The position numbers and the translations under genes are program-made. From Blepharisma stoltei ATCC 30299 (lineage: Eukaryota; Protista; Ciliophora): a stretch of DNA of 64,000 nt. Under the pieces are notes generated by a model. It saw nothing but the letters and a program-made list of their open reading frames with translations, was not told where the DNA came from and searched no databases. Numbering within the stretch: position 1 is the first letter of the stretch; each line of letters begins with the position of its first letter. The stretch spans positions 62,001 to 126,000 of the forward strand of contig CBFDEM010000061.1 in the NCBI GenBank assembly GCA_965603825.1, given 5' to 3'. Positions 1 to 64,000 of this stretch are shown piece after piece.

Positions 1-3000
1 AGTAAGGCACATACAGTGGTCTACAGGCTTATAAGCATTTGTAATGCAGCTTGTACATTCACCTGAAAAAGTAGTGCACGAGTAACATTCTTTGTCCCTG
101 CAAAGTCTACAAGATAAATTACTGACACACCCTTGGCTGCAGCCTGCCAAGCAAACAGTGCAGCTATCTGGGTATTCATTTACAGCGCAATTACTTAAGC
201 ATTGATTATTTGCAGGGCAAACTGAGCATCCACCACCACAAGAAGTAGAATAATCATCAGATTGATGACTATAGGAGCTATAAATATTAACTCTTGCTAA
301 AAACCCATATAATCCTAAAGTCCCAGAGGTTTCGTCATTTCCAATATATAAAATTCCTGTATTAGTATCTTTAAAGTAAATTAGAGATGACGTTGTGGTA
401 ACAGCAAATGCCGCTGTATTGATATAGAGAGACAACTTCGTCTTGCCATCGTTTTGGACCTGCCCTGTAAAGCTTAAAAAGTTCCAACTACTTATTATGT
501 TTGTTGGAGTAGTTAAAGTGAGAGATGATGAATCAGAAAAGGTTACTGAAAGCAAAGGATATCCTGAGGAGACTATTGATATTTTTAGGATATCGCTCAA
601 AGTATATTTAGTCAATAGAACTCCAGCTGAAAGTGGCTTTGCCCACAGGGAAATAGTGAAGGATGGTGCTATTACGACAGTGGAATATAAATAATTGCTT
701 TGATAAAAATAGTAGCCTCTTTTATAAGAAGGAATAGGATCCTTTGCATCTAAATTCCAATCAGGATAAATATTTGTATTCACAGAGCCTACATTAAACC
801 CAGAAACTGTATCAAGACGTACTTGGTCAGTCAAGTCTAGACCAATCCCTAAATCTGATGACCAATCGCAAGCTTTTCCTGCAGAATTTGTACTATAGCC
901 AGATGGGCATTCAACTAAGCACTGCCCAGTTGGTGCAAAGAAATAATACCCTGAAAAGCATGCTGTGCATTTTACATAAGTTAAACCTGTACATTGAGAG
1001 CAACCAGAAGAGCATTGATCACAGGAAAGCCCATCAGCAGAAGTTGTATAGCCAGGATTACATACACAAGGAGTTCCACTAGCATTAGAAACGCATTGGG
1101 TGCATTTTCCTGAGCCAAATCCAGAACAAATAGAGCATAATAAATCATCACAAATATTGCATATAGATGACCTGACACAGCCTTTACTACAGGAATTGCA
1201 GGCTGTATAAGTAGTCCCATCATAATAATGAGATAAATCACAAGACCATAAACAAGCATAGCCAGAGCCACAAATAGCACTAATATAGCTTGAAAAATCA
1301 TTAATTGGAGAATTTCATAGCTGAAAAGCATTGATAACCCCTACAAAGCCTGAAGAGCTGCTTTTCCCGATCATTAAATTTGTGGTAGCAAGGTCTCTAA
1401 ACACATAATTTAAAATAAGTGTATTTGCAACTGAAACACCATTGAGATAAATATTGAGATTTGTGACACTAGAAGTGTATTCAAAGGTGACTGATAAATA
1501 GTTCCAATTAGTTAGAGTAGACCCTGAAGATAAACTTTTAGTAGACACTGTTTGTGTAGGGTCTTCCATTTTAGCACTTATATCTCCTGTAGAATGTAAA
1601 ACAAGTTGCTGGCTTTCTTTTTCAAGCCAATCTCCATCAGTGATTACATAAAGTCAAGCTCCTATAGAAAAACTATGTGAAAACAAAAAGTTAGCTGACG
1701 ACAATAAGTACATGCTTCCATCAAAATATAAGCCTCGCTTATATGCAGGAATCGGGTCAATTGATTCAGGAGTATTAAAAAATTGAAAAGATGATGTACT
1801 TGTTCCTGTTGCAAAAATCCCATAAGAGCCTTGAAAGTCTATATTGAAAGATTGATCTATCACAGGGGTTGAGACTGGTGAACAAGGAGATCCAAATCCA
1901 TAAGGACAACCATTTAAGCAGACGTTCCCAACCAGTTGAGAGCTTCCTGAGCAAAGAGAGCATTCAAAATAAGTTGTTTTTATACAAGTAGAGCATAAGG
2001 CATCACAGATTTCGCATGTTTGAGATGAAGCTACCCAAAAAGCATTAGTACCGCAAGTGCAGCCTCCAGTCCCATCAGCAACAGCATTTGCAATGCAAGT
2101 CAAGCATGAATTTGTCCCAGAAAACTCTGTGCAGGTGGCGCATTCTTTGGTCTTGCAGAGTCTGCAAGTGTCAGCATTTCTACACCCTTTACTGCAGCTT
2201 GCTATACAATTTGTGCAGCCAGAGCCATTATAGTATTGGGATAAAGAGCAGTTATCAGGGCAACTTAAGTCAGCTGGACACTTTGTGCAGCTACCTGAGC
2301 ATCCAACTGTCTGATAATCGTCTAAAGCATGGCCACTTTGGGTACAAATTTTAAGAGTTCATAGAAATCCTGTAAATGCTAAACTAGAATCCCCAATTTG
2401 CATAATTCCTGATTGACTGTCTAAAAGGTAAAGTGGAGTAGCTGTAGTAGAGGAGACTTGATTGGTTCCATCAATATAAGAACTTACCGTTGTTGTCCCA
2501 TCAGCATTAATTATGCAGTCAAATGAAACAAAAAATCAGTTGTTAAGCACACTTGAAGATCCGGTAACTGATATAATGGTTGATGAATCTGATAGAAGAA
2601 GTGAAATATTTGGCTGTCCTGAAGCCAAAATATATATAAGTCATTGAGTTGCCGATACAAACTTAGAAATAATCTGGCCAGATGTTGTAGCTTTTATTCA
2701 TATAGAAATTGAAAAGGAAGGAGCAAGCATAAAATTTGTTTTTATATAGCTATCAGAATTAAAATAGTATCCTCTCAAATAAGAAGGATAAGGATCATTT
2801 GGGTCATAGTTTGAATATGAATTAGCATTTGAAGCCCCAACAGTTATCCCAGAAATGGTACCTAGCAAGATACTATTAGATAAATCTAGCGAATAAGTTG
2901 CAATAGAAAGATCACAGTTTTTTGTACCTGAATTTTGTGTGTATCCTGATGGACACTCTGGTAAGCACTGAATATTAAGAAAATAATGCCCAGTTAAACA

Positions 3001-6000
3001 GGCTGTACACTGGTAGTATCCACCTCCAGTGCAGGTTTGGCAGTTTGCTGGGCATGCAACGCACGAAAATCCATCATTTGAAGTTCTAAACCCTGAGTCA
3101 CAAACACAATTTATTGGGTTTTTTGAAGCATTGGATACACAATTATTGCATTTTCCTGAGCCAAAACCTGCACAGATAGAGCATAATAGATCGTCACAGA
3201 TATTACATGTATTAGCTCTGATACATCCTGTGCTGCAGGAATTACAAGCAGAGCAAGAAGCACCGTTTTTATAGGTAGAGATCCCACATGTCGATAAACA
3301 AGAAGCTCCTAGCCCTGATCCACAAAACGTAAAGCCATTGATAATAGCTGAAAACCCTGTAATCCGAGTATTTCACAGCTGAAAATAATAAATAAACCCT
3401 ACAAACCCAGAGCTACTACTTTTTCCTAGCTGCAGATTGGTTGATGCTTGGTCCCTATATATTCTGCCAGAGATAGTAGTCGACCCTGCTGAAACTCCGT
3501 TTATATACAGAATAATAGGCGAAGCATTTGATGTATAATATAAAGTAAAAGACACATAAGCCCAGCCAGTGAATGAGGAGCTTGGGGATAAAGTTCGTGT
3601 AGATGTTGCTTGTGCAGTGTCTTCCATTAAAGCTGTTATAGCGCCTGTTGATGAAACTGTTAGCCTTGTTTGTTTTTGCAATAAATCTCCATTAGTAGCT
3701 ACATAAATCCATGCACCAATAGAAAAACTATGAGAAAGATAGACAGAAACTGAAGATAATAAATACATGTTTCCATCAAAATATAGTCCTCTTGCATAGG
3801 CAGGGACAGGATCTACAGTCTCAGGGGTATTAAAAAATTGATAAGAACTTGAGTCTGCTCCTGTAGTAAAAATCCCATAAGATCCTTGGAAATCAGTGTC
3901 GAATAATTGATCAATCACTGGTGTTGACACTGAAGAACAAGAAGTTCCATAGCCATATGGACAATCATTTAAACAAGTACTGTCTACTAATTGTTTCCCT
4001 GTATCGCAAGTAGTGCACTCAAAATAAGTAGTTTGCTTACATACAGAACAAATTGCATCACAAAAGTCACAAGTCGCTGTACTAGAATGCCAAAAAGCAT
4101 TTGTCTTGCATTGGCACCCATCAGACCCATCACTTTCTGCATTTGTAATGCAGCTTGAGCAAGATCCAGAAAAAGAAGTACATTCATAGCACTGTTTTGT
4201 CTTACAAAGTCCGCAAGTATCTGTATATCTGCATCCTTTTGTGCAAGATCCCATACAATTAGCGCAAGAAGAGCCGTCATAATATTGCAATAACGGACAA
4301 GAGTTAGGACAATTATGATCGCTAGGACAGCTTGTGCAAGGAGAAGTGCAGCTTGATGTTGTATAGTCGCTGTACTGTAAGTTTTCGACGTTATAAATAT
4401 TTAAGTCATATAAAAATCCAGTAAATCCACTGCTTAAGGTAGATTTTGTCCCAGTATAAAGAGTGCCTGAACTGCGATCCTGAAAATAAGCAGCATTTGA
4501 CGAGGAGCCTGAATCTGTTGCAAGAGAATTAAAATATGAGTTTATTGTTGTTATGTAACTTGTGTCGATTTTTCCTGTAAATGCGATAAAGTTTCAACTA
4601 TTCAGTGCAGAATGGGATAAAGTTACTGAAAAGGATGATGAGTCGCTCAAAGTGATGGAGAGCTTTGGGTATCCAGACCCATTTAAAATTTCTAAGCAAA
4701 ATATTTCAATCCCAGAAATTGTTTTCGAGACAATAGTTCCAGCCCCAGTTGGATATACTCATATTGAAACAGTAAAATAAGGCCCAATCACGGTATTAGT
4801 CGACAGATAGTAACTACCACTGAAATAGTAGCCTCTTAGATATGATGGATATGGATCATTTGAATCATAACTAGGATATGTATTTGAATTAGAAGATCCT
4901 ACTTGGACTCCCGCAATAGAATTAAGCATAATTTTATCATAAAAAACTATGCTCAGCCCAGTATTCGACAAAAAATCACAGCTTTTTGTGCCTGTATTTT
5001 CTGTATACCCAGTAGGGCAATTTGAAAGACATTGTATGCTGCCATATAAAAAATAGCTAGAGCCACAGGATGCACACAAATAATAAGCTGAGCCAGTGCA
5101 AGAAGCACATCCAGTATAGCAAGCAGAGCATAAAGCTTGATTTATCGGCTGATAAAACCCAGAATTGCAGGAGCATGGAGTCCCAGAGGCATTATCGATA
5201 CATAACGTGCAGGCACCTGATAAAAATGATGAGCATTGTTTGCATAAAAAGTCGTCACAGATATAGCAGGATGTCCCTCGGGTACAGCCCATTGTGCATG
5301 TACCTATACATGGCTGGCACATACTTCCATCATAATAATGAGAGTAGTCGCAGGACCATAAAGTTGCCACTATGCCTCCAGAAAAGCCAAAAAGATTATA
5401 AGGAGTAGAAAAGTCAGTGGTAGTGGTTCCTCACAGCTGGAAATAGCTGATAAAGCCATTGAAATTTGGAGACCCTTTACCTATATATAAAGTCTCACCA
5501 CTTGCTAACCGAAATACATAATTTAAAGCTGTTACTGCTGTCCCAGCTACTGTATTATAATATGGAGTTAACGTTGTAGTCTTACTTGCAAACCCTACTG
5601 AATAAGAAACATAGCTTCATGCATTCAAAGTTATAGTCTGTGATGTCGAATAGCTTGCATAAGTCCCATCCCATTTTTGTAAGTCAAAATTAATAGTCCC
5701 ACTCGAACTTATAGTAAGCTTATTAGTGGTATGGCTAATAATAGTCCCTGAAGTAGCAAAAATCCACATCCCTATACTCCAAGTATTGGACAAATTCTGA
5801 GTCACTGTCAAATATTGATTGGAATTAAAGTAAAGTCCTCTTTTTTTTGCTGGCAATGGATCAGACCCTTCAGGAGAATTCCAATAATTATAGCTGCTTG
5901 AGCTTGTCCCTGTAATATAAACTGAAGTATAAATCCCTGCAAAAGTCCCTGTGAAATCTCCAGTTGTCGTACCAAAACAAGAATTTCCTCCACAGTTCCA

Positions 6001-7158
6001 CCAGCCAACTGGATACCCATACAAGCAAACTCCTGCATTATTAGGGACTCCAGTGTTGCAGGCTGTATTTGTCCAGGTCTGTGTACAAGTTGTCCCTAAA
6101 ATATCACAACACCCAGGAACTATCCCTGTAAAGCATGCGGTACACATAGAAAGCGAATACCCATAGCAAGCACTGCAGTCTGAAGTATAACAAATCCTGC
6201 AGTCTGTGCTTCTAATGCACCAAGGCCAGGTAGGACAGCTTGTATCACAATTCTGACAGGCAGCTCCATCTCAAAACTGATTATCAATACAGTTAATTTT
6301 GTTCGGCATATCCACATAATTTGTATTAGTGTCAGCTCTAGCTTGTAGCCAATAAATAAACCCTCTAAATGAGTTTCCTCCACTAGTATTCCCAATCGTT
6401 CACGTATAAGTTCCAGTAGGGAAGCTTACTTCTGCAGAAGATAAAGGTGTTGTCCCAACCGATGACCCGTCAATGTAAAAAATAATGCTTGCTGAATTAC
6501 AAGAAGTTTGCTCGAGAAGCATCGAAGCTGAATGCCAAGATGACGAATAAGAAGAGCCAGAACCAGTAACTGTATTGGCATTTCCACTGGAATCATAAAT
6601 TTTTGCAGTAAATTTATAAACTCCAGAGGAATCAGCCCATATTCGGAGATATTGGGTTGAGCTTGAAATGACATTTAAAATTTCCCCACTGGCAAGTGGC
6701 TTAATTCATAGGGTTAATATAAAATAAACTGCTGGGGTGTAGCTCTGGTTACTAGTGATTCCTGAAGTTGTTGCAAAATAAAACCCACGATCATATGTCG
6801 GAAGTGGTGAATTTTGGGTCGGAGAATTATAAGAAATAGACCCTGGGTTGTTCCACTTATCGGCAGAGTTACTAGTGCTTGCAATATAAGTTGCTGATAA
6901 GTCTTTGATATTGGAAAATTCCAATGTAAATAAAATAGCGCCTGCGTCAGTGGGCTTGCCACACATTTTGCTGCAAGCAAAGGGGCAATATAGCTGATAA
7001 TAACTAAAAAGAGATGGGCATGCATTTGCACAAACCTTATTGTCAACATAATATTTAGAGCTTAGACAGGCAGTAGCTCCTAAGACGGTTATGCTGTTGT
7101 TTGGGCATACAGAATAGACAAGCACAATTTGACTGATAAAAATTAAGGCTTTGTTCAT
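1..7158 (-). CDS. Giant LamG/furin-repeat surface protein, paralog A (3' end outside window; >2,380 aa; 7 LamG-like modules visible)
   Basis: ORF fragments 6706-7158, 5617-6147, 4759-5370, 3373-4290, 1654-2103 and 1315-1569 are all in one frame and are separated by TGA at Trp positions (e.g. LTL-W-IKP, FQL-W-N). Starts with a signal peptide-like MNKALIFISQIVLVYSVC. Repeated DP(Y/I)PxYxRGxYF ... WIKP ... YING ... GFxGF motifs alternate with CxxC/CPxGY Cys-rich linkers. Confidence 0.88.
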
Positions 7159-7694: not shown

Positions 7695-10600
7695 TTATAT
7701 TAACTTTTTTCTTTTATAATTTTCCTCTAAAATTTGTTGTTGATTTTTTATAATTCCTGCTTCTGTTAGTTTATATTTGATGATTTCATATAATGTCCTT
7801 GCAAAAATGGCTATTGAAGCTAAAATTTGAATCCCCATAGCTGCGATCACAATTGCTACAATTCCATCCTCAATAATTGACATAATTTTGGGATCCATAT
7901 TAAATAAATAAACTGTAGTTGCACTCATAATTATAAAAATGCCTCCTTCCGTTAATAAATTGCTTATTTGTAAAATAGAGTCCTTAAATGGCCAAAAGAA
8001 AATTAAATGTAGAATAGTTATCACTGAAAGAATGATATTAATGGTCACTTCTGTTTGTGGATAGTCTCTTAAAAAAACTAAATTTATGATATAGATGAGT
8101 CTCCTTGCAAAGAATACAAAATAATACTGTGTTGCAAGTGGCCCACGATCAGTTCGAAATTCATAAAAAAACGAGCTAAATAGCTTAGTAAAGGTCTTTT
8201 CTTGTGATTGGATCCTATTTTTATTTTTATAAGAAAACCAGAAATATACTGGTGGAGTAATAGCATGGAAACTATAAATAGCTGAACACATAATAAAATT
8301 CGCTACTTGAGTGTTATTATTAAATCCAAAAGTAATAAGTCCAATACTTGAAGCTGCTCCCAGTTCTAGATAGCATTGTATTCAAAATCTTATATAAAAG
8401 GCAAAATGATAAGCCTTGACGCTTTTCATAAATTTCTTACCAATTCATCTGAATGAGCATCGAGAAAAGAAAAGCACAATTGGGAAAACTAATAGAGAAA
8501 CCAAAATCAGTGTAAAATCATTACCTGCAGTAATTAATATCAGATCAGTGTCAAACCCAAAATCTTTTGCTTTAGAATAAGGAGTTTTTCCTTCATCTTC
8601 ATCTATAATATATGTAAAAGCATTTGGAAATAAGTTAAAGGAGTTCAAGCTATTCAAAAAAGCGCTCATTTTGCTGGATAAAGGAATCCCAGACAAAGTC
8701 AAGTAGCTGAGAATCTGTAAACTGTTCATCATACTCCATAAAGAACTTGGATTAGAATTTATAACAGATAAAACAGCAGCTACAGCAATGCCTGTTTGAG
8801 CAACAACAGCAGCTTGAGATGATACTGCTGCAATAGCTGGAGAATTTGGCGCAGGGTCATAAGAATTTAAGAACACCGAAATTTCTGAAGAATTTAAGAC
8901 ACCATTTGATACTGATCTCACTTCAGTCAAATTTGTAAACTTAAGCATAGCTAATGTGCCTTTTGATATTTCTTCTGAAATTTTTAAAGTAATGTAATAG
9001 CATGCACTGTTTACCTGCTCAAATTTATATGATATTTTTCCTAGTTTTTTAATTTTTATAGTAAAATCATCTATAGTAAGATTCTTAGCAAGACTGTCTG
9101 AAAAAATGAGATAGAGAGAATTATCTGATAAGACTGAGAGTTTTGCTGAAAAAGGAACTAATATGCAATTTGCAGTTCCGTTATAGCCTAAACTACAATA
9201 GCATAAGCTATTAATTAGATTCGCATTTTCCACACAGGCAGTGCATTCTGTAAGAGACTGACAATAAGTGCAGTATTTCGGGCATGAATAAAATTTGCCA
9301 TCAGAGCCTCTAAACCCACCAGCCTCAAGAAGAATGCAAGTGCTGTTGCTAGAAGTGTCCAGAACATAATTGAGATCACAAATGCATGAGTCAGGGTTTA
9401 TTGCATACTCTTTACAAGCTGAGCACCCAGAATCAGAATAATCAGTGCAGATGTCGCATAATAAATTACTACAAAGAGAGCATGTTGATCGCCAGTCTCT
9501 ACAGGATTTCTTGCATTTAATATTACAATTATAGCATTTATTATAGGCAGGCCCACTTCAATATAGATTTATTTTGCAGTTAGGAATGCATTTTTGGCTT
9601 ATTGGGCAGACATTGCACGGTTCGGTGCAAGATGTTGTCGCTAGAGCTGATATTGATTTTACTGTATTAAATATCTGAATTGTATAAATAAAGCCTTGAT
9701 AAAAATTATAAACTGATGATGAACTTATTTGAGCTCCTATAGTCATTGTAGTAAAAAAACTAACATCAAGAAAGCTTCCATATCCTGTCATTACTGATGA
9801 GTCAGAAGCCCCATTTATATAGCAGGATAACTTATTGTAGCCATTTTGAGCAGTTTCTAATGTAAATACAACATGGCTCCATTCATAATGATTAAGCGAT
9901 GCTTGGCACATATAAAAGAATGGAGACGAGTTTATTAAAAGAGAAATCGTTGGCTTGTCACTAGTTAAAGTGATAGAGTAAAGAGCTGAATAATTATCAG
10001 AAACATTATGTTTTGATAATAGAGAAGAAAATGACGCTTTAATGTTTAGCCATATAGAAATAGTAAAGTTTTTGCCCATTACGAGTTTTGGAGATGTATA
10101 ATTTAAATAGTCAGGTAGCCTTAAAACTGAGGACTGACCATTAAACCAGAAGCCTCTCAAATATGCAGGGATAGGATCATCATCTTCATAGTCTGGATAA
10201 AATTGGCTAGTTGATCCAGTAATAACAGGTATTTCGCTTGCACTATCATAAATGACTCCATTGAGAGTATTCAAATCTAAATCAAAAATTTTTTCTTGAA
10301 CCAAAATACATCCACTTACCGTTCTGGAATACCCTGATGGGCAGTTACTTACACAAATTCCTGAAACCATATAGTAATCATCAGCACATGTCAAACAGTC
10401 CAAATAGCTAGCAGATGTACATGATTTGCAAGAATTATCACATTTTACACAAATATTTGTCCCAGGACTTGCAAAATACTCTGATGGGCATGCACTTAAG
10501 CATTCACCAGTGGCTGCATAGAAATTATATCCTGAAAAACATGCTAAACAATCATAAGAAGCTAAGCTTGTACATTGAGAACAGCCAATATAGCATGCCT

Positions 10601-13600
10601 CACATGAAAATCCATCAGAAGAAGTCTTGTATCCAGCATTACAGATACATTGGCCTGGAGCTCCACTAGCATTAGTAACACATTGAGTGCATTTACTTGA
10701 CCCAAAGCCACTGCAGACAGAGCATAATAAATCATCACAGATATTGCATGTAGATGCCCTGACACATCCTTTACTGCAGGAATTGCAGGCTGTATAAGAA
10801 GCCCCACCATAATAATGAGACAAGTCACAAGACCATAAACAAGTATATCCTTGTCCTGTGCCACAAGCGCTATTAATAGAGCTTGAAAAATCACTAATAG
10901 GTGTATTTCATAGCCGAAAAGAATTAATAAACCCCACAAAGCCAGAAGAGCTGCTCTTGCCTATCATTAAACTTGTTGTAGATAGGTCTCTAAATATATA
11001 ATTTGAAATAGGTGAGCTTAAAATTGAAGCGCCGTTTAAATAAATCCTAATATTTGTTAAGTCAGATGTATATTCAAAGGTGAATGATAAATAGTTTCAA
11101 TTATTAAGTGTCGTACCTGATGATAAAGTTTGAACAGATGTTGTTTGGGTAGGATTTTCCATTTTGGCTCTTATATCTCCTGTAGAGTAGAGAACAAGAT
11201 ATTGATTTTGCTTTTCCAGCCAGTCTCCATTAGTTATTACATAAATCCAAGCTCCAATAGAGAAACTATGTGAAAGCAGAATATTTGTATTTGATAGTAA
11301 GTACATCGTCCCATCAAAATATAAGCCTCGTTTATATGCAGGAATCGGGTCAATTGATTCTGGGTTATTAAAAAATTGAAAAGATGTTGAGCTTGCTCCT
11401 GCTGTAAAAACTCCATACGAACCATAGAAATCTATATCAAAAGACTGATTTATTACAGGGGTTGATACTGATGAGCAAGGATTGCTATACCCATAAGGGC
11501 AGCCATTAAGGCAAACAGTACCAACTAATTGGTAGCTTCCTAAGCAAGTAGAGCATTCAAAATAAGTTGCACTTATACAAGTAGAGCATAAGGCATCACA
11601 GATTTCACATGTTTGAGATGAAGCTACCCAAAAAGCATTAGTATCACAAGTGCAGCCTCCAGTCCCATCAGCAACTGCATTTGTAATGCAAGTCAAGCAT
11701 GAATTCGTCCCAGAAAACTCTGTGCAGGTGGCGCATTCTTTGGTCTTGCAGAGTCTACAAGTTTCAGAGTTTCTGCACCCTTTATTGCAGCTTGCTATAC
11801 AATCTGTGCAGCCAGAGCCATCATAGTACTGAGATAAAGGGCAGTTATCTGGACAGCTTAAATCAGCTGGGCACTTTGTGCAGCTACCTGAGCATCCAAC
11901 TGTCTGATAATCGTCTAAAGCATGACCATTTTGACTATAAACTTTTATATTTCATAAAAATCCTGTAAATGCCGCGCTAGCATCCCCAACTTGAAAAATT
12001 CCTGATTGACTGTCTACATAGTAAAGCGGAGTAGGTGTTGAAGCAGAAACCTGATTTGCCCCATCAATATAAGAGGTTATCGTTGTTGTCCCATCAGCAT
12101 TAATTATGCAGTCAAATGACATAAAAGTTCAGTTGTTAAGTACACTTGAAGATCCTATAACGACAAGAAATAATAATGGGTCTGATAGACGAAGGTAAAG
12201 ACTTGGCTGGCCTGAAGCAGAAATTTGAATAATTCATTTGGACCCTGATATATACTTAAGCATGACAATACCACCTGATGTAGGTTTTAAGCACAAGGAA
12301 ATTGAAAATGAAGGGGCAAGCATAAAGCTTGTATGCATATGGGTCTTGATAGTGAAATAGTAGCCTCTCAAATAAGAAGGATAAGGATCATTGGCATCAT
12401 AAATTGGATATGAGTTTGTACTTGATGCTCCAATACTATTTCCAGAAAAGGTGCCTAGCAGTATCTCATTAGAAAATGACATTGAATAAGTTAAAGATAC
12501 AAAGTCACATGTATGCGTCACTGAATTTTGGGTGTATCCTCATGGGCATTCAGATAAACATTGAATATTTAGAAAGTAATAGCCATTTTTGCAGCTTGTG
12601 CATTGATAATATCCAGGTCCTGTACAAACTTGACATCCTGTTGAGCACTGAACACATGAAAACCCATCAGTAGAAGCCACAAATCCAGTATTGCAAGCAC
12701 ACAGCCCTGGAGCTCCACTCGCATTTGCAACGCATTGAGTGCATTTGCCTGAGTCAAATCCTGTGCAAACAGAGCATAATAAATCATAACAAATATTGCA
12801 GGTATTTGCCCTGACACATCCCAAGCTGCATGAATTGCAGGATATATAGTTTGCCCCATCATAGAAATGGGATAGATCACAGGACCATAAGCAAGCAGAT
12901 CCTGAACCGCACACTGCATTGATAAAGCTTGAAAAATCACTGATTGGGGTATTTCACATCTGAAAGCTCCTAATGAATCCTACAAAACCAGATGTGGTGC
13001 TCTTCCCAATTATTAAAGAACTTGTAGAAGTATCTCTAAAAAGCCTATTTGAAATGAGCAGGGATGAGACAGGAGACCCATTTATATAGATTGTTAAAGT
13101 AGAGCTCCCAAGATAATAGATTGAAGTAACTGATAAATATTTCCAGGTATTGAGTGGACTGGCTAAGGACAGGGTTACGGGCAACAATCCCCTCGCAGAA
13201 TTTTCCAATCTGATGGAAAAACTCCCTGTTGATGCATAATTGAGCCGGTCAGGTATTTTTTGTAGCCAGTCACCATTATTTATGACATAAATTCAAGTTC
13301 CAAAAGAAAAACTATGAGACAGCTGAGGAGTAAATGACGGTGCCAAGTACATATTTCCATCAAAAAATAAACCTCGCTTATACGCAGGAACAGGATCAGC
13401 TGTCTCAGGAGTGTTAAAAAACTGAAAAAGTGCTGGATCTGTCCCTGTCGTAAAAATTCCATATGCACCTTGGAAATTTCCATCAAAAGAAATATCAATA
13501 ACAGGAGTAGACACTGGTGAGCAAGGAGAAGTCCCAAACCCATAAGGGCAGCCATCAAAGCATACAGTCCCAATCAAATTGTAGCTCCCTGAGCACGCAG

Positions 13601-16562: not shown

Positions 16563-17193
16563 TATATAATCTTATATTTTTTGCTTATTATTTATATTAT
16601 AATATGATCTTTTTCTGAAGGGCTAAACAAGCCAGCTCTTTTAACTGCGTTTTCTGATATTATCAAACAACCCTATTCATTCAATGCATGAGTTCATCCA
16701 ATCAAGTCTTTGATAATTCTGCCAGAAGGCCTCATGATCTGCGTTTTTTGCTGTTTATCTTTCCTGCATAAATAGCCAACTATCGTGAGTGCTCAGCAAT
16801 AAAACCTATTTCTCCCATAATCCAAGGGCTGCCTCCTTAGCATACGCACTATGCGCTCCTCATATATAAACAATTATCTTTTAGACCCCATCTTTGGTGT
16901 GAGAAAATTCTAAACTAGCAAAACCAATGCTGCTTTAATTTAACAAACTACTATCAGGTTTTACCAAATAGAAATCTTCGCATCCCAATAATCGGACTAT
17001 TCATGATAATAAGTATAGCTGGATAAAGAGTTACTGGAAAAAAGGATCATATTAAAATTGCCAAGAAGAGAAAGTTATCCTTAAAAATTTCTCCAAAAAC
17101 ACCCTTAATATTATTTCAAATATTTCATCAATAAATTTTTTTAATTCTTAATGTCTAATATTGATTTGTTTCAACAATTATGCCATTATGATA

Positions 17194-28354: not shown

Positions 28355-28519
28355 ATAATTATTATCTAATTTATATAAGGATATATTTTTTTTTAATTAT
28401 AAGAAACAATTTATCTCATCTAAAATTTAATTCCTCAAGAATTAAGCCAATCGAAGAGAGGCAGAACTTGCTAGGCAATTCTTAGAACAATACTAACTTA
28501 CTTTTAACTAATCATTTTA

Positions 28520-43400: not shown

Positions 43401-43456
43401 TTCACAGCCAAATTGTGCAAAAAGTAAAGAAAGCTGATCAAAAAATTATTTTATAA
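34439..43456 (+). CDS. Giant LamG/furin-repeat multi-pass membrane protein, paralog E (~3,005 aa; 7 LamG-like modules)
   Basis: Signal peptide MLGIFILIAHAVLVLSACP. Eleven ORF fragments from 34418 to 43456 share one frame and are separated by TGA. The gaps read by hand had no TAA/TAG. Ends TAA. Confidence 0.9.
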
Positions 43457-52900: not shown

Positions 52901-55900
52901 TACATTTAAACTCGCATTAATAACACACTGAGTGCATTTTCCTGAGTCAAATCCTGTACATTTCAAGCATAATAAATCATAACAAATATTGCAGGTATTT
53001 CCCCTTACACATCCAAGGCTGCATGAATTGCAGGATACACAGTTCGCACCATCATAATAATGAGACAAATCACAAGACCATAAGCAAGCTGACCCTGATC
53101 CACAAGCTGCATTTATATAGCTGGAAAAATCAGTTATTGGAGTATTTCACATCTGAAAAGACCTAACGAATCCAACAAAACCTGATGTGCTGCTTTTTCC
53201 AATTGTTATAGTGCTTGTAGCACTATCTCTAAAAATCCTATCTGGAACTAGAAGTGATGAGAGAGCAGCGCCATTCATATAGATTGCTAAAGTAGTTTGC
53301 CCTAGATAATAAATAGAGGTGACTGATAAGTACTTTCAAGTGTTGAGTAGACCTGATGAGGACAAAGTTACAGGAATATTGGTATTATTCCAAAGTTGAA
53401 GTCTAATAGTAAAGCTCCCCAATGAAGAATAATTAATCAAGATAGATTTTTGCATTCAGCTACCATCAATAATTACATAAATTCAAGCCCCTAAAGAAAA
53501 ACTATGAAACAATTGAGGGTTTGTTCAGGTTGATAAATGCTTACTTCCATCAAAAAATAAGCCTCGCTTATATGCAGGGATAGGATCAAGAGCCTCAGGG
53601 TTATTAAAAAACTGAAAGGACACGAAATCTGTACCTGTTACAAAAAGTCCGTATTGGCCTAGAAAATCTCCATCAAAAGATAAATCGATGACAGCAGTTG
53701 ACACTGGTGAGCAGGGAGATCCAAACCCATAAGGACAGCGACTAAAGCAGACTGTCCCAATCAAAAAATTTGTTCCTGAACACGCTGAGCATTCAAAATA
53801 AGCTGTTTTCAAACAAGTTGAGCAGAAATTATCACAAATTTCGCAAGACTGTGATGAAGATACCCAGAAAGCATTATCTGCACATTTACAGCCCCCAGCT
53901 CCATCACTTACAGCATTTGTAATACAAGTTAGGCATGAATTCGCCCCTGAAAATGCAGTGCAGGTAGCACATTCTTTTGTCTTGCATAATCTGCAGGTAT
54001 CAGAATTTCTGCATCCTTTAGTGCAAGTATCTATACAGTTTTTGCATATAGATCCGTCAAAATATTGATTAATTGAACAGCTGTCCAGACAAGTTAAATC
54101 TCCTGCACATTTTGAGCAATTTCCTAAACATCCTGAAGTAACATAAAAAGTGTCTCACGAGTTTGTTATAGGGATAAGCTTAACTTTCCATGCAAATCCA
54201 GTGAATCCTGAGCTATAGTGCCCTAGATATAGATCTCCTGATGAGCTGTCTAATGGATAAAGAGGAATTGTAGATGAAGAGGTGGCCAGGTTGGCTGTAT
54301 CAATATAAGATTTTGCAGTAGTTGTCCCATCAGAATTAATATCACAATCAAATACAATGAAAAATCAATAATTTAGGGCGCTTGATGCACCTGTTACAGA
54401 AAGAATTGTAGAAGAGTCTGAGAGGAAAACAGAAAGTTCTGGCTGTCCTGAAGGCAAAATTTTCACAGACCATTGGGTTGTACCTGATATATACTTGATT
54501 AAGAGGAGACCATCTGTAATAGGCCTTATTCAGGCTGTGATAGAATGAGAAGGTGAAAGCATATAACTTGTTTTTAAATAGCTGCTAGGGTTAAAATAAT
54601 ATCCCCGATTATAAGCTGGATAAGGATCATTAGGGTCATAATTTGGATATGAATTGATATTCGATGATCCTACGTCTTTTCCAGAAATTGAGTCCAAAAG
54701 TATTATCTTAGGAAATAAAAATAGATAAATATAATCAACACCAAGATCACAGCTATTTGTTGTAGAGTTTTGGGTATATCCTGTTGGGCATTCCGGTAAA
54801 CATTGTATATTAAGAAAGTAATAGCCTATTTGGCAGCTGGTACATTCGTAATATTCAATTCCAGTACAAGTTTGACATCCTGGTCAGCAAACGAGGCGGG
54901 AAATTTTAGGTATTTGATTAGAAAAATGATCTTTGCACATTGATAAAGAATAACCGTAGCATGAACTGCAATCTGTGGAACTACAAAAACTACAGTCACC
55001 GCCTCTAATGCACCAAGGCCAAGTTGGACAGTCAGCCTCGCAATTTTGACAAGCAGATCCATCTCAATATTGATTATTAGTGCAATCAATAGTGATAGTC
55101 ATAATCCCATAGTTTATATTGCTATCAGCTCTTGCTTGAATCCAATAAATAAATCCTTTAAATGAGTTGTTTCTGCCTGTATTTCCAAAAGTCCATATAT
55201 AAGTCTCAGTTGGAAAACTTATTTCAGAGTTACTTAGCATTACTTTTCCAGCCTCATTCCCATCTATATAAAAGGTTATGGAGCCTAAATCACAACACAA
55301 CTGCGACAGAGAAACTGAGAGTGAGTGCCAAGATAACGAATATTTAACAGAGGAGGCTCCAGATACTGCTATTTGAGCCCCATTGGAGTTAAAAATTAAT
55401 GCACTAATTTTATAATAGCCAGAGATATCTGCTCATATCCTCACATATTGTGTTGAATTTATTTGTATATTTAAAATTTCTCCACTTCCCAAAGGCTTGA
55501 TTATCAAATTTAAAATAAAATAAAGGCCAGGTGTATAGCTCTGATTGCTTGTCATACTTGATGTATTAGCAAAATAAAAGCCACGATCTAAAGTCGGAAG
55601 TGGAGAATTTTGTGTTTCAGAAATATATGGGATTCCTCCTGGGTTCACAAATTTCTTATTAGAATCATTTAGATCTGACACATAAGTTAAAGTTAAATCT
55701 TGAACCTTTGATAGTATTAATGTGAATAAAATTGCATCGCTGCCAGTAGGCTTACTACAGTAGCTAAATCATCCTATATCAAAATACTGTTGATAGAAAT
55801 AATAAAGTGTAGGACATCCAGCTGCACATACTTTGGAATCCACCATAAATTTTGGGTTATTACACCCAGATCCTCAGCTATCATATGGGCAGCTTGAAAG

Positions 55901-55942
55901 AGTCAATACAATTTGAGAGACAACAAAGAAGAGCCAGCTCAT
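49964..55942 (-). CDS. Giant-family paralog G (~1,992 aa; 4 LamG-like modules; sister of B)
   Basis: ATG at 55942 gives MSWLFFVVSQIVLTLSSCPYDSW. Fragments 55433, 55064, 53525, 52397, 50696 and 49964 are in one frame. Ends TAA TAA. Confidence 0.87.
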
Positions 55943-56232: not shown

Positions 56233-59200
56233 TTAAGATTCTAAAGTCTGTTTTTTATACTCATAAGGATTTTTTTTCATAATTCCTGCTTTGGTAAGTT
56301 TATTCTTGATCACTCCATATAAAGTTTTTCCAAAAATGGCAATTGATGCGCATGACTGTATTCCAATAGCTGTTACTACAGTCGCTATAATAGCGTTTTC
56401 CACAATTGAAACAATTTCCTGCTCTAAATCAAACAAATATACCGATGTTGCACTCATTATTAAAAAAATCAATATTTCCGTCAAAAAATTGCTCACCTGT
56501 AAAATAGAATCTTCAAAGGGTCAGAAAAATCATAAATGCATAATAGTCATCAGCGACAGGACAATATTAATAGTCACTTCTGTTTGAGGGAAATCCCTTA
56601 AATATACCAAATTTATTATATAAATAAGTCTCCTCAAAAAAAATACACAGTAATACTGTGTTCCAAGTAGCCCACGATCAGTCCGAAACTCATAAAATAA
56701 AGAACTAAATGATGCAAAAAATGATTTTTCTCGTGACTGGATCCGATTTTTATTTTTATAGGAAAACAAAAAAAATGCAGGTGGGGTGAGAATCAGCAGT
56801 ATACAAACTGCTGAACATATAATAAAATTGTTAAGCTTTGTGACATTACTGAATTCAACACTAAGAAGCCCTATAGCTGAAGCAGCTCCTAATTCAAGGT
56901 AGCATTGTATCCAAAATCTTAAATAAAACGCAAACTGATAAGCCTGAACCGTTTTTCTGAATTTTTTACCAATTCATTTATAGGAGCATCGTGAAAAAAA
57001 GTAAACAATTGGCAAAGCTGAGATTGACGTCAATAACAGTGTAAAATCATTTCCTGTCGTTATAAGGATAAGATCAGATTCAAATCCAAAATCCTGGGCT
57101 TTAGAATATGGAGCATTCCCTTCATTTTCATCTATAAAATACTGGAAAATATTTGGAAATAAATTATAAGAGTTCAAATTATTCAAAAATGTGCTGATTT
57201 TGCTTGATAAAGGGATACCTGACAAAGTCAAATAGCTGAGAATCTGCAAAACGTTCATTATGCTTCATAAAGAACTTGGGCTTGGATTTAGCACAGATAA
57301 AGCTACAGCACCAGACACTGCGATGAGAGCTGCTGCTTTAGCTTGTGAAGCAATTGTTGACACAATTGGAGAATAAGGTGCTGGGTCATATGAATTTAAA
57401 GCTGCAGAAATTTCTGATGAATTTAAAATCCCATTAGAGACTGATCTAATATTATTTAAATTCAAAAACTCGAGAGTAGCTAGTGTCCCTTTTGCAATTT
57501 CTTTTGAAATTGATAGAGAAATATAATAGCAGGTACTATTAACTTGCTCAATTTTGCATGAAATTTTTCCTTGATTTTCAATTGTAATAGTAAAATCAGT
57601 GACTGTTAAATTGTTTGCTAAACTCTCTGAAAAATAAAGATATAGAGAATTATCAGATAAAGCTTTGAGATTTGCATAAAAAGAAACCGAAATGCAAGAT
57701 TTGGTACCATTGTAACCACTATTACAATAGCAAAGGTCGTTTTTTAGGCTTGCATTTTCTTTACAGGCTGAGCATTTGGTCAGGGATTCACAAGCTGCGC
57801 ATAAACTAGGGCATGGGTAAAAATATCCATCTGTGCCTTTGAATCCGCCTGATGGAATCGGGATACATGTGCTGTTATTGGAAGGGTCCAGCACATAACT
57901 TGTATCACAAGTACAAAAATCAGAGTTAATAGCGTTCTCTTTGCAAGTAATGCAGCCTGAGGAAGAGCAATCAGTACAATCTTTACATAGAAGATTATTG
58001 CAAAGTGAACAAGTAGGTTGCGAGTCCTTACAAGTAGTTTTGCAATTAAAATCACAATTATTGCATTTATTATAAGCAGGGCCACTTCAATATTCTTTTA
58101 TTTTGCAGTTTGGAATGCATACTTGGCTGATAGGACAAACACTGCAGCTTTCAGTACAAGATGTAGTTGATAGGCTTGATATAGGTTTTAGTGCATTAAA
58201 AATCTGAACAGTATAAATAAAGCCTTGATAATAATTATAAACTGCTGAAGAGCTAATTTGAGCTCCTATAGTCATTGTGGTATGAGAGCCTATATCATTA
58301 AAAGTTCCATATCCTGTCATTGCAGAATAATCAAATATCCCATTAATATAGCTTGACATTATATTATAGCCACTTAGAGCTTCCAATGAAAATTCTAAAT
58401 GGTTCCACTCATAGCTAGTAAGTGAGGTTTGGCACGAATACACAAAGGGAGACGTGTTTATTATTAGAGAAATTGCTGGCTTGTTCGACATTATTGAGAT
58501 AGAATAAAGAACTGAATAATTATCAGTAATACTGTATTTCGATAATAGAACAGAATTAGGGCTCTCAATGTTTAGCCATATAGAAATTGTGAAGGTAGGA
58601 GTGACTAAAAGCTTTGGTGATATATAATTGGAATACTCAGGCAGCCTTAAAAGGGAAGACTGCCCATTAAATCAAAATCCTCTTAAATAAGCTGGAATTG
58701 GATCATCAGCTTCATAGTCTGGGTAAAACTGTATAGTAGATCCAGTAACAACTGGGATCGAGTTTGCTTTATCATAAATGACTCCATTCAGAGTGTTCAA
58801 ATCCAAGTCAAAAATTTTTTCTTTACTCTTAATACATACACCAGAAGAAGGAGAATACCCTGCTGGACAGACTGCTAGGCATACCCCTGAAAACATATAA
58901 TACCCACTTTTACACATTAAACAGTCTAAAGGACTAGACGATGTACAGGTTTTACAAGAAATATCACATAACTCACAGCTTTCATCATTAGTATTCCAAT
59001 AATACCCACTATTGCATTGACAGTTTACACCTATTAGGTTTGCATTTGTTTTACAAGTAATGCAGGTATTTGTAAAGTCATCACAAATTTCACATATTAC
59101 GTCTTGGCAAAGATTACAATTTTTATCACTTCTTACACAACCAATCCCTCAGCATACTGTTAAGCATGGCGTACAGCTGTTACCATTTCAGTAACTGTCA

Positions 59201-62200
59201 ATTAGACAGCTATCTAAGCATGTATTAGCGTTATCAATTGGACATAATGAGCACCCATTGCAAGTGCTTGAGAATAAAGGGCTAGCTGGTGTATTATAGA
59301 TTTTTAAATCCCATAAGAAGCCTTTGAAAAATGAAGTCAGAGTTGCAGTGTCAAAGTGGCTTGCTCCAATTGTTATGAAGAATGAATTTTCTAAATCATT
59401 TAGCCAGCTTGCGTGCAGGTCACTTGATGTATCGGTGACTCCGTTAATAGATAAACTTATGGTTTGCTGAGGGGTAGAGCTTGTGCTAGAAATTGCTGAT
59501 ATAAAATTCCATTGAGAAAGGGCGACTTGTAATGAAGGATTTGAGCTTGTATAGGATACAGTAGAAGAATCTTTTAAAGAAATAGTAAGTGATGGAGCTT
59601 TATTTATCAGTTCAAGACAGACATATTTTTCAAACAGACCACTATTGGCTTGCTTGGAAAAAATAGTCGCTGTGGCAGTAATTGGCTTTATTCAGGACGA
59701 TATAGTGAATTTTGGAGAAAAAGTAAACAACGGTGATGAAGTGGCTGTATAAGGAGGCAGCTGCATATAAGCTGACCCAGAAAAATAATACCCTCTATAA
59801 ATAGCTGCGATTGGGTCAGTTGTATCATAATTCGGATAAAACTCATTATCTTTGCCTGTAAGTACTGGAATACTCGAAGCTAAATCGACTACAATGTCCT
59901 TTATTTGATGAGGCCTCAAATTAAATACTAAAAAATTACTATAAGCAGGGTCACTATCACAATTGCTACCATTTATAATATACCCAGTAGAGCAAAAAGT
60001 AATACATAAAGACTGAATAAGATAATTCCCTGATATACATGTAATGCAGCCATTATATTTAATAGTAGAACAAGACGCACAAATAGCATTGCAAAATTCA
60101 CAGGTCTTAGAACTTGACACTCATACTGCGTTATCAAGACATTTACAATGCCCAGCCAATTTATAAGCATTTGTGATACAGTTTATGCATTCTCCTGAAA
60201 AGGTGGTGCACGAGTAGCATTCTTTGTCCCTGCAAAGCCCACAGGTAAACCCACTGACGCAGCCTTGGCTGCAGCTTGAACAAGCTGTGCAGCTGTCTGG
60301 ATATTTATTAAAATCACACTCACTTAAACATTGATAGTTTGCAGGACAAACAGAGCAGCCAGTTGTGCAAGAAGAAGTAGCATAATCATCAAACTCGTGA
60401 CTATAAGAGTTATATATGTTTAGCCGAGCTAAAAATCCATATAATCCTGAGCTAGTAAAAGTTTCATCATTTCCTATATATAGAGATCCTGCATTGGTGT
60501 CTTTAAAAAAAGTCAAAGTTGTTGTCATGGTAGTGCTAGCAGGAGATGCTGCATTATTTATATAGAGAGCTAATTTTGTTTTCCCATCAGATTGGACTTG
60601 TCCAGTAAAGCTTATAAAGTGTCAGCTGTTTAAAATACTTGTAGAAGCTGTCAGAACTAAAGATGAATTATCATTAAATTTGATAGAAAGCTCTGGATAT
60701 CCTGAGGAATCTACATTTATTTTAAAAATGCCACTGGAAGTGTATTTAGTCATTAAAATCCCAGCACCAAGCGGTTTAGTTCATATAGAAATTGTAAATG
60801 ATGGAGCAATCATAACAGTAGAAGACATATAGTTGTTGTGGTAAAAATAATAGCCTCTTTTATAAGCAGGGATTGGGTCTTTGGAATCAGATCAATTTGG
60901 ATAAGCATTACTATTATCAGAACCTACATTAAAGCCAGAAACTGTGTCAAAGCGAATCTGGTCTGTTAAATCTAGACTTACCCCGACCACAGATGCATAA
61001 TCACATATATTTGTCCCTGAATTCGTGCTGTACCCAGACGGACACTCATTTAAGCATTGTCCGGTATTTTGAAATAAATAAAGCCCTGAATAGCAGGCAG
61101 TGCATTTATTATAGCCTGTATCTGTACAATGGCTACAACCACTGTAGCATGCCACACATGAAAATCCATCAGGAGAAGTACCATAGCCGGTAATGCAGAC
61201 ACATGGACCAGGAGCGCCATTAGCATAAGTAACACATTGAATGCATTTCCCTGAATCAAAACCGGTACAGATAGCGCATAATAGATCATTACAAATATTG
61301 CATGTAGCTGCCCTGACACATCCTTTGCTGCAGGAATTACAAGCTAAATAGTTCGTTCCGTCATAATAATGAGATAAATCACAAGACCACAAGCAAGAGC
61401 TGCCTGAGCTACAAAGTCCATTTATATAGCTTGAAAAATCACTTATCGGCACATTTCACAGCTGAAAACTGTTAATAAACCCCACAAACCCAGGAGAGCT
61501 GCTTCTTCCTACCCATAAGCTTCTAGCTACATTATCCCTAAATATCCTATTTGTTACAGGAGTAGTTGCAGCAGAAGCTCCATTAATATAAATAGCTAAA
61601 TTTGTAACAGCTAAACTATAGCTAAAAGTGACTGATAAATAAGTCCACCCTGAAAATACAGTACTTGAAGTCAATGATTGAGTGTCGCTGCTTTGTAATG
61701 GGTCTTCCATATTGACTGTAATAGTTACTGCTGTAGATAAGGAAAGGAGAAATTGTTTTTGGAATCAGTCACCGTTAGAAATTACGTAAACTCAGGCTCC
61801 TATAGAGAAACTGTGAGAAATCAAGATGTTGGAGGAGGTAAGGACCATAGTCCCATCAAAATAGAGGCCTCGCTTGTAAGCTGGGATTGGGTCAAAAGTT
61901 TCTGGGGTGTTAAAAAAGTTATAAGATAAAGAGCTGGTGCCTGTGGTGAAAATTCCATATAAGCCTTGAAAATCTGTAGTAAAGGATTGGTCTATGACTG
62001 CTGTTGATACTGGCAAGCAAGAAGTTCCATATCCATAAGGGCAGCTGTTAAGACAGACTGTGCCAACTAATTGGTAGCTTCCTGAACAAGTAGAGCACTC
62101 AAAATACGTATTTTTCAAGCAAACCGAGCAAAGCATATCACAAATTTCACATGTCTCTGAAGAATATATCCACAAGCTATTTTGTGCACATGTGCAGCCA

Positions 62201-64000
62201 CCAGTCCCATCAGGAACTGCATTTGTAATACAAGTCAAGCAGGAATTCGCCCCTGTGAACGCTGTGCAGGTGGCGCATTCTTTCATCTTGCATAATCTAC
62301 AAGTATCAGAATTTCTGCATCCTTTCAAACAATTTGCTCTGCAATTTGTGCAGGCAGAACCATTAAAATATTGTGATAACGGACAGCCATCCAAGCAGGT
62401 AAAATCAGCAGGGCATTTAGGGCAGCTATTACTGCATCCAACTGTTGTAAAATCGCTTAATGCGAATCCGCTTTGGCAGTAGATTTTTAATGTCCATAAA
62501 AATCCAGAAAATCCTAAATCATAATGTCCAATATACATAGAGCCTGATTGGCTGTCTAAAAGATAAAGAGGAGTCGCTGTTGTTGCCGCAATTAAATTAG
62601 CCCCATTAGTCCAAGTTTTTATCGTTGTTGTCCCAGCAGCATTAATTTTGCACTCAAACGATACAAAAAATCACCCCTGATTCAGCAGATAGGTAGTCCC
62701 TATAACAGAAATCGTCGTTGTTGTGTCTGATAACAACAGAGAAAGCTTAGCATACCCTGAGTTTAAAATCTGTACAAACCATTGGGTTGTTGACACATAT
62801 TTAGTTATCACAAGTCCAGCCGCAGTCGGTTTTATCCACATTCCAATTGAAAAAGTCGGAGCAAGCATAAAAGTTGTCTTTAAATAGGTATTGTAATCAA
62901 AATAATACCCTCTCAAATATGCAGGATGAGGGTCGTTGGCATCATATGTAGGATATGTATTAACATTTGACAACCCTACGTTTACTCCTGAAATAGTGTC
63001 AAGGAGAATATTATTAGAAAAAGAAAGCCCATAAGTAGTAGAAGAAAGGGTACAAGAATTCGTGGCAGAGTTGGGAAGGTAGCCTCATGGGCATTCAGAT
63101 AAACACTGGATGTTTAAAAAATAAAAGCCACTTTTGCAGCTTGTGCATTGGTGGTAGCCACTTCCTGTACAAGTTTTGCAGCCAGTATAGCAGGCAGAGC
63201 AGATAGCTTGGTTTATAGGCTGATAAAAGCCAGGGTCACATGTACATGGAGTTCCAGAAGCATTAGAAATGCATAATGTGCAAGAATTAGATGCAAAAGA
63301 TGAGCATTGGGAGCATAAAAAATCGTCACAGATATAGCAAGATGTCCCTCTAGTACAGCCTATTGTGCATGACCCTAGACAGGTTTTACAAGTGCTTCCA
63401 TCATAATAATGAGCATAATCACATGGCCATAGAGTTGTGCCTGCACTTGTATATACAGTATAAGATGCTGAAAAATCTGTAACAGTCGTTCCTCATAGCT
63501 GAAAATAGCTAATAAATCCATTAAAATTTGGTGAGCCCTTTCCTATATATAAAGTTCCACCATCTGCTAATCTGAATACATAATCTGTGACTGTAACTGC
63601 AGTTCCAGCGACATTATTAATATATGGCGTTAAAGTTGTAGCTTTATTAGCAAAGCCAACTGAATAAGAAACATAGTTCCAGGTGTTTAAGGTTATAGAT
63701 TTTGATGCTGAGTTGCTTGCGGATGTCCCGTCTCATTTTTCTAAATCAAAATTAATAGTCCCACTTAAGCTGATAGTAAGCTTATTACTGCTATGGCTAA
63801 TTATAGTCCCTGAAACAGCAAAAACCCAAATCCCCATGCTCCAAGTATTAGAAAGATTTATAGACCCAGCTAAAAACTGGTTAGAATTAAAATAAAGGCC
63901 TCTATTTTTTGCTGGAAATGGGTCATCTATCTCAGGAGAGTTTCAATAATTATAGCTGCTAGAGCTTGTCCCAGTATTAAACACAGACCCATAAACTCCA
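56233..64000 (-). CDS. Giant-family paralog H (5' end outside window; >2,580 aa; 6 LamG-like modules visible; TM domain)
   Basis: Twelve ORF fragments from 62671-62973 down to 56233-56496 share one frame. The frame is still open at the window edge (GVYGSVFNTGTSSSSYNYWNSPE). Ends TAA at 56233. Confidence 0.87.

Follow-up and report, generated by a model that had tools for sequence, protein, structure and literature searches.

In fungal Flc/Pkd2 proteins, a small N-terminal extracellular domain (TRP_N) precedes the transmembrane (TM) domain. Pkd2 of S. pombe passes Ca2+ under membrane stretch (PMC9727806). The protein family described here resembles these proteins in joining an extracellular N-terminal part to an apparently remotely homologous multi-pass C-terminal domain (PF06011), but replaces the small TRP_N-type domain with a LamG/furin-repeat ectodomain of 1000-4000 aa and numbers ~60 copies. 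A second comparison is provided by DGF-1 of Trypanosoma cruzi and the bodonins, proteins of ~3000 aa with seven tandem modules that cluster by position, an Ig-like part and a multi-pass TM part (bioRxiv 10.64898/2026.07.27.741050). Here too, a large multigene family carries tandem modules grouped by position, followed by a probably Ig-like segment and multi-pass TM domain, and DGF-1_C is among the atlas neighbours of that domain (0.90), which we take only as a lead for TM homology. However, DGF-1 has a canonical set of seven ribs formed by beta-helices, whereas the present proteins have 2-13 LamG sandwiches separated by Cys-rich linkers.

Among ciliates, the 90-bp-exon LRR families of Tetrahymena vary in repeat number through unequal crossing over within and between genes and have been proposed as a recognition repertoire (PMC6564038). 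The units described here are instead 1-kb LamG+linker modules within long ORFs, and neither an exon-phase rule nor a retrotransposon was seen. Tetrahymena MTA/MTB and Paramecium mtA combine furin-like Cys-rich repeats with a conserved C-terminal TM part (PMC7786109), a likeness of gross layout; five TM helices are present there, and LamG arrays have not been described in them. Tandem LamG domains with disulfide-rich linkers also recur in neurexin and laminin LG arrays, in LamG- or pentraxin-bearing adhesion GPCRs and in polycystin-1 (Foldseek), at fold level only (6-20% identity). No GPS/GAIN, REJ or 7TM_2 match was found in the array proteins, and the same ciliate cassettes occur on REJ(+GPS) C-termini in this genome, REJ and GPS being confined to the sister proteins P0013, P0009, P0018 and P0021.

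A tandem array of LamG/furin-repeat membrane proteins

The window, a 64,000-nt stretch of Blepharisma stoltei MAC contig C61, contains seven long genes (Table 1) whose reading frames stay open only when TGA is read as sense (Trp); the standard and TAR=Gln codes were rejected, as neither yields long ORFs. The long ORFs of C61 show no sign of introns. The contig is repetitive and 298 kb long, its array comprises ~31 loci, and the family occupies 79% of its first 256 kb, with three pseudogenes or fragments interspersed among the copies. Roughly 30 further membrane-domain copies lie on other contigs, and relatives are present in Stentor, SteCoe_8686 among them. We read C61:1-256000 as DNA, while C61 256-298 kb and the other contigs were covered from match coordinates and database proteins, making their module strings less sure. 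Expression signal is weak and consists of low-depth contigs from runs guessed to be RNA.

Table 1. Genes, modules and junctions of the window (window coordinates unless marked C61).
Feature	Position	Strand	Description
Gene A	1-7158	-	3689 aa; a-b-c-d-c-d-e-f-g, stalk, TM; identical to database protein P0004
Gene A, part beyond left edge	C61:58092-62000	-	f, g, TM
Gene A modules	a 6285-6933; b 5349-5955; c 4335-4968; d 3285-3921; c 2286-2907; d 1239-1869; e 186-855	-	
Gene B	7695-15812	-	a-c-d-c-d-g-TM
Gene B a-to-c junction	near 14747	-	odd-number loss
Gene B d-to-g junction	near 10448	-	modules 7+8 lost
Gene B duplication	15363-15477	-	in frame, 57 nt
Gene C	17188-24600	+	pseudogene; leader-c-d-e-f-g-TM
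Gene C lesions	near 18790; 19154; 22241; 24103	+	frameshift; in-frame TAA; in-frame TAG; 8-nt deletion
Gene C intact paralog	C61:127767-135299		
Gene E	34439-43456	+	canonical a-b-c-d-e-f-g-TM
Gene E modules	a 34652-35297; b 35603-36230; c 36608-37232; d 37643-38282; e 38666-39299; f 39716-40406; g 40838-41516	+	membrane domain from about 42275
Gene F	43872-49238	+	leader-c-d-g-TM
Gene F parts	c 44604-45228; d 45651-46269; g 46647-47328	+	membrane domain about 48081-49235
Gene F junction	46415-46435	+	d-e linker joined in frame to f-g linker; modules 7+8 gone
Gene G	49964-55942	-	1992 aa; a-c-d-g-TM; identical to P0019
Gene G modules	a 55078-55726; c 54115-54715; d 53071-53701; g 51865-52549	-	
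Gene G junctions	54898-54931; near 52693	-	a-to-c; d-to-g
Gene H	56233-64000	-	canonical a-b-c-d-e-f-g-TM; 2990 aa; full ORF identical to P0006
Gene H, part beyond right edge	Met at 65205	-	start and module a
Gene H modules	b 63420-64000; c 62421-63045; d 61380-62007; e 60354-60996; f 59250-59934; g 58143-58821	-	

Each protein begins with a signal peptide (atypical in the group whose strings open with a leader) and continues through its LamG/ConA-like modules and furin-like linkers. A stalk, which includes a Cys-poor segment that is probably Ig-like, and the conserved multi-pass membrane domain complete it. In one family member, a malectin domain stands at the N-terminus. A per-module tree resolved seven classes, in which a is module 1, b module 2, c modules 3 and 5, d modules 4 and 6, and e, f and g modules 7, 8 and 9. 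Modules cluster by position, with b sister to d, c to e, and module 8 to module 9, leaving module 1 as a class of its own. The classes differ by more than 55% at the protein level (c and d are only 28% identical), and linkers b-c and d-e share 44% identity, compared to 22-37% for other linker pairs. A preliminary description of this DNA had reported two anchor motifs, which are real, in modules of ~340-370 aa, close to the measured period of about 335-375 aa; its two alternating module types describe modules 2-7 but not 1, 8 and 9. All seven of its module strings agree with the tree, although the 'd1' it assigned to genes C and F amounts to just about the first third of module 1. Its statement that module 9 is present in every complete copy applies to C61 1-256 kb but not to the whole genome, where P0005 ends c-f-TM.

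The modules match PF13385 above the cut-off in several pieces (best 1.8e-10) and contain the jelly-roll beta-sandwich of about 150-200 aa typical of LamG/ConA-like domains. A d-c-d three-module model (pLDDT 89, pTM 0.63) yielded Z-scores of 13-18 to LamG, CBM40 and pentraxin folds, every module resembling glycan-binding sandwiches such as AbnA domain 4 (Z 17.9), CBM40 (Z 15.9) and pentraxins. Each module is thus predicted to be a complete, independently folding sandwich domain. Neurotoxin chains in the fold searches were set aside, as they share only the common LamG-like sandwich at 10-18% identity.

The membrane domain and a possible sensing role

PF06011 matched 7 of 26 homologues at E<=0.1 (best 1e-6), while the first window member gave no match and no window protein reached the Pfam cut-off, unlike the fungal proteins. 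A TM profile retrieved P0169 (E 1.9e-23), which itself passes the PF06011 cut-off and so provides a transitive link, suggesting that the domain is remotely related to fungal Flc/Pkd2. The fold predicted for the TM domain is of low confidence (pLDDT 49.7) and matched no known fold, and Foldseek, atlas and PDB sequence searches returned nothing usable. A TM search with a single sequence, under a length filter, recovered just fragments of this family; Pfam returned no match in the stalk/Ig segment or the C-terminal 650 aa.

We then considered what the proteins may do. A variable recognition system, as first proposed, is plausible. We tentatively suggest, at a likelihood a little short of even, that glycans or glycoproteins carried by prey, substrate or other cells would be the ligands of the LamG modules, with module number setting reach and avidity, and that tension or binding on the tethered ectodomain would reach the membrane domain and become a Ca2+ or other signal. 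A broader proposal, in which recombinable LamG cassettes coupled to an Flc/Pkd2-like Ca2+ pathway and REJ/GPS polycystin-1-like partners would form a heterotrich-wide, ligand- or tension-gated sensor repertoire for innate, paralog-specific recognition of prey, mates or touch, is speculative and improbable as a whole. For mating, the gamone 1 receptor is still just putative (PMC10892320).

It is less likely, but worth weighing, that the family is a structural coat or adhesion family in which the membrane domain is a mere anchor and differences in length are mostly drift that is tolerated in an array prone to recombination, an idea put forward for other multigene surface families of protists. 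We found dN/dS values of 0.2-0.3 overall with a maximum of 0.87, and hence no sign of positive selection (no dN/dS >1), which is consistent with a coat, as are the pseudogenes and the reuse of a remote PF06011 relative in unrelated protist surface families, to which the atlas placement of DGF-1_C points. However, the conservation of the TM domain (dN/dS 0.21, with invariant charged residues in its helices) exceeds the need of an anchor. Amino-acid change is higher in the LamG modules than in the C-terminal part (614/512 versus 288/338, p=7e-4), and in the leader group the c module lying outermost evolves significantly faster than the modules next to it (84/27 versus 74/74, p=3e-5, a comparison chosen after the fact), the latter speaking against a coat.

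Module pairs and repeat register

The preliminary description held that the module pair is the structural unit. As it reported, the A/E, A/H, B/G and C/F differences are exactly two modules with the frame kept, and the junctions of the 7+8 losses lie in Cys-rich linkers. B and G, however, are separated from A by an odd count of modules, module 1 being joined directly to module 5, a difference left aside there by counting only 'homologous' crossovers. The internal (5-6)n, or (c-d)n, core follows the pair rule strictly: among the B. stoltei copies that were read or mapped, none has two c or two d modules side by side. Genes with intact ORFs have lost module 2 alone (C61:212k), module 8 alone with an e-g join (C61:250k), half of one c module (C61:201k) or, in the abfg gene at C61:291k, the three modules c-d-e.

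An underlying explanation is provided by DNA self-similarity in gene A, which occurs at shifts of two and four modules (1189 nt at 67%) and at a shift of one only as a single 69-nt f/g piece, so that the pair bias of the internal core arises from period-2 homology. Where a junction unites non-homologous linkers, losses of an even and of an odd number of modules come to about 5-6 each (5/10 even, p=0.53 versus 40% expected). The pair rule is therefore mainly a footprint of repeat register, and the pair is not obligatory. Modules 7 and 8 were lost jointly through five junction forms, compared to one loss of 8 alone and none of 7 alone on C61; the linkers flanking the joint loss are not especially alike (32%), and this residual bias is left unexplained by homology. 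An asymmetric rule, in which b, d and f require their upstream partner, was rejected on the abfg gene and P0044.

We consider it unlikely that the pairs a-b, c-d and e-f, with the same linker type, form structural or functional units and that selection purges most single-module changes. The strict core, the joint removal of e and f by five distinct d-to-g forms and the pTM of the three-module model, which would fit one rigid two-module block, agree with such units. Against them stand the open ORFs with a-c (twice), e-g, b-f and half-c joins on C61, the roughly equal even and odd losses, the complete predicted fold of every module, and single-module runs in relatives (f x4 in P0012, d x6 in P0015 and c-c in Stentor P0031), which together contradict the pair as an obligate unit.

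Recombination, probably in the germline

Unequal crossover, also proposed initially, and ectopic exchange as the source of ectodomains of varied length are supported by several observations. Gene A is mosaic, with a B-like c-d pair set into a C61:47k-like frame; recent conversion tracts between the 201k and 212k genes are 98-100% identical with flanks at 77-82%; and microhomology junctions are in frame, including that of gene F, which sits at short microhomology (Asn-Ala codons) and recurs in paralogs at C61:142k, 148k and 176k. Module number and order were thus shown to vary via recombination within and between paralogs. Because conversion makes such trees unreliable, a C-terminal gene tree built by a quick method was left out of event ordering. 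The recurrence of junctions at separate loci, together with conversion tracts and the low overall dN/dS, argues for real, selected germline variation and not mis-assembly.

We consider it probable, on balance, that the family is a birth-and-death tandem family of giant surface proteins shaped by (c-d)n register and linker deletions, with a putative sensor role. The core is an old two-module repeat, and homologous crossovers, pairing c with c or e and d with d or b, therefore change its length by whole pairs. Microhomology deletions in Cys-rich linkers, which are rarer, take out one, two or three modules at a time and persist if frame and Cys spacing are maintained. Such changes would build up in the germline over evolutionary time.

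Programmed somatic assembly, in which the developing MAC would join cassettes to one constant TM part, is very unlikely. MTA/MTB are assembled somatically onto a shared exon, and a ciliate host, furin-like repeats and a C-terminal TM part that stays constant recall that system. However, each of the ~31 C61 loci keeps its own diverged TM domain (mean identity 60%); the junctions are old, common to paralogs 3-20% diverged and under purifying selection; and gene G is tiled by contigs from two DNA runs, each of a different study, which show no indels and do not break at the gene's junctions. Mis-assembly chimeras are hardly credible: although the contig is repetitive and no single short-read contig examined spans gene G, identical junctions recur at 3-5 separate diverged loci, the module classes differ by over 55% in protein, short-read contigs agree with G at 99-100% in 30/30 bins, and the assembly was built from HiFi reads (PMC9942806).

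The pair rule is the lesser result beside the family itself, which has ~60 membrane-domain copies and Stentor counterparts, and which databases label only as 'unnamed' or 'TNFR-Cys domain' proteins; our literature searches for this protein family in ciliates found no describing paper. These findings suggest that protists in general use the PF06011-like membrane domain as a platform for ectodomains that are large and variable, and they make the family a set of concrete candidates for how large heterotrichs may sense prey, partners or mechanical contact.

Modular anatomy and census of the family

In a comparison of genetic codes on the window, only reading TGA as sense gave long open reading frames; the published HiFi macronuclear assembly of B. 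stoltei ATCC 30299 (41 Mb, 64 sequences) uses UGA as Trp (PMC9942806), and the genome we searched comprises 41.46 Mb in 64 contigs. C61, the contig carrying the window at positions 62001-126000, begins with CCCTAACA repeats. Translations of window genes A, G and H are identical to database proteins P0004, P0019 and P0006, respectively.

Family ORFs occupy 79% of C61:1-256 kb, and a profile of the C-terminal multi-pass membrane domain (TM) detected about 31 C61 loci, with about 30 more in the rest of the genome. Searching with a repeat profile, we found modules spaced at 335-375 aa that match LamG_3 (PF13385) and are joined by Cys-rich, furin-like/EGF-like linkers. When 147 modules from C61:1-256 kb are placed in a tree, they group according to position as classes a (module 1 of the preliminary description), b (2), c (3/5), d (4/6), e (7), f (8) and g (9), with b+d, c+e and f+g as sister classes; all seven module strings proposed in that description are borne out. 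The leader it called d1 contains the first third of module a only. In the leader group this module a remnant is accompanied by a second signal-peptide-like stretch, and the leader is open in 7/7 copies despite weak constraint (dN 0.16, dS 0.25). On other contigs, (c-d)n runs reach 13 modules (P0003), and other forms read acffffg (P0012), end in f without g (P0005) or carry an N-terminal malectin domain (P0008). The array includes pseudogenes, gene C being disrupted at four places. Most family copies off C61 contain one or two in-frame TAGs inside the TM match, mostly absent from C61 copies; they may represent very small in-frame introns that the C61 clade lacks.

Module strings on C61 and coordinates of associated features (strings at the far end of C61 were read by coordinates only)
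Feature	Location	Copies or remarks
abcdefg	C61	10
abcdcdefg	C61	
abcdcdcdg	C61	
abcdcdg	C61	2, one with half of c deleted
acdcdg	C61	2
acdg	C61	2
leader-cdefg	C61	2
leader-cdg	C61	4-5
abefg	C61	
abcdeg	C61	
abg	C61	3
abfg	C61	
ab joined directly to stalk (segment before TM)	C61	1
Leader group	window 43872-44600 and 17188-17840	seven paralogs; leader ~200-240 aa
57-nt exact in-frame tandem duplication of the conserved module a anchor motif, gene B	window 15363-15477	
~54-nt linker insertion, gene C	window about 19724-19790	relative to intact paralog at C61:127k
Kelch-like and TPR-repeat genes	window 25597-34370 (-)	between genes C and E; several frameshifted; TPR confirmed by Pfam
Gene similar to those of the kelch/TPR block	C61:44758-47415	
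Contig meeting gene G by two 21-nt matches	window 53658-53845	one contig in three runs; long unrelated flanks
Copies with in-frame TAG	C6, C12, C24, C29, C40, C48, C63, C2	off C61
REJ or REJ+GPS fusions	P0013, P0009, P0018, P0021	P0013 modules map near C40:311-317k

Pairing of modules and its exceptions

The preliminary description took the module pair as the structural unit, with paralogs differing by whole pairs. Pairing is indeed strict within the c-d core of B. stoltei, where we saw no c-c or d-d neighbours, and register explains it: gene A resembles itself in DNA at two- and four-module shifts (1189 nt at 67%) and at a one-module shift in one 69-nt piece only, so homology-guided crossover moves whole pairs. 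Classes c and d are 28% identical, and linkers b-c and d-e share 44%, compared to 22-37% for other linker pairs. Junctions between non-homologous linkers show odd losses at about the same frequency as even losses. The 212k locus (named by its position in kb on C61) lost b alone compared to its sister 201k, through a 14-nt imperfect microhomology; genes B and G have a second a-to-c junction in common, f alone is lost at 250k, b is joined to f at 291k, and half of c is missing at 201k. Even-side joins are d-to-g and b-to-g. Even losses made up 5/10 events by an approximate count, versus 40% expected (p=0.53, no departure). On C61, five junction forms mark the joint loss of e and f, compared with a single loss of f alone and none of e alone; this bias keeps alive, to a limited degree, the idea of e-f as a functional unit.

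Modules also fold independently. In a model of the d-c-d segment of gene A (40-row alignment; pLDDT 89, pTM 0.63), every module is a complete ConA-like sandwich, and thus there is no sign in this segment of two modules completing one fold; neighbouring modules may still share a packed interface. The best fold matches are AbnA domain 4 (Z 17.9, rmsd 2.5), CBM40 (Z 15.9), PAPP-A LamG and pentraxins. An obligate pair is therefore not supported, given these single-module folds and the single-b, single-f, b-f and half-c events.

Recombination, selection and assembly support

Nearest-paralog scans reveal mosaics generated by recombination: in gene A the first c-d and e-f are closest to the 34k/47k genes, the second c-d to gene B; identity of 201k with 212k is 98-100% over d-g and drops to 77-82% downstream; and for 220k with 230k, 94% identity is confined to the last part of the TM. 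Mis-assembly is disfavoured: several loci that have diverged share identical junctions, and gene G is tiled without indels by short-read contigs of two DNA studies, although none of the contigs listed clearly spans both of its junctions. The contig meeting gene G by 21-nt matches is probably another locus with short motifs in common. In runs tentatively taken as RNA, contigs of low depth match 17-21 of 30 gene G bins, weakly suggesting expression.

The family is under purifying selection (pooled dN/dS 0.30 in LamG modules, 0.23 in linkers, 0.19 in the stalk and 0.21 in TM). Amino-acid change is relatively higher in LamG modules than in the C-terminal part (p=7e-4), and dN/dS reaches 0.87 in the leader group's outermost c module (p=3e-5, test picked post hoc). 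This faster change fits relaxed or perhaps diversifying selection.

Relatives and proposed function

Stentor coeruleus P0031 reads adccg-TM. An environmental eukaryotic contig (L021:10001-25536, standard code, 41.5% GC) holds adjoining family genes a-dddddd-c and a-dd-c, which have a single-module period of ~305 aa and differ by four near-identical d modules. The TM, described earlier as constant, is so only within this family, since B. stoltei also fuses the same LamG/Cys-rich cassettes to REJ and REJ+GPS C-termini, a layout resembling polycystin-1. Modules a-b-c-d-c-d of P0013 are close to C61 modules, which suggests that cassettes have moved from one receptor class to another. In the membrane domain, at least six helices are clearly hydrophobic; the structural model of this domain is unreliable. 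Sequence evidence points to a remote relationship with PF06011, and the atlas places ciliate clusters, PF06011 and DGF-1_C among its neighbours. Membership tests placed the family outside DGF-1, adhesion GPCRs and MTA/MTB-type assemblies.

Our literature search found no description of the family, which is real and apparently undescribed. The variable recognition role proposed for it is putative, and the family is varied by a known process: the tandem array would vary in the germline by unequal crossover and microhomology deletion. In how it works, the family resembles DGF-1 (bioRxiv 10.64898/2026.07.27.741050) and Tetrahymena LRR genes (PMC6564038), which are likewise modular surface families of protists. 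With less confidence, the modules would bind glycan or glycoprotein at the cell surface, module number would set reach and avidity, and the binding ectodomain would couple to a Flc/Pkd2-like membrane domain, a relative of which in fission yeast lets Ca2+ through when stretched (PMC9727806).
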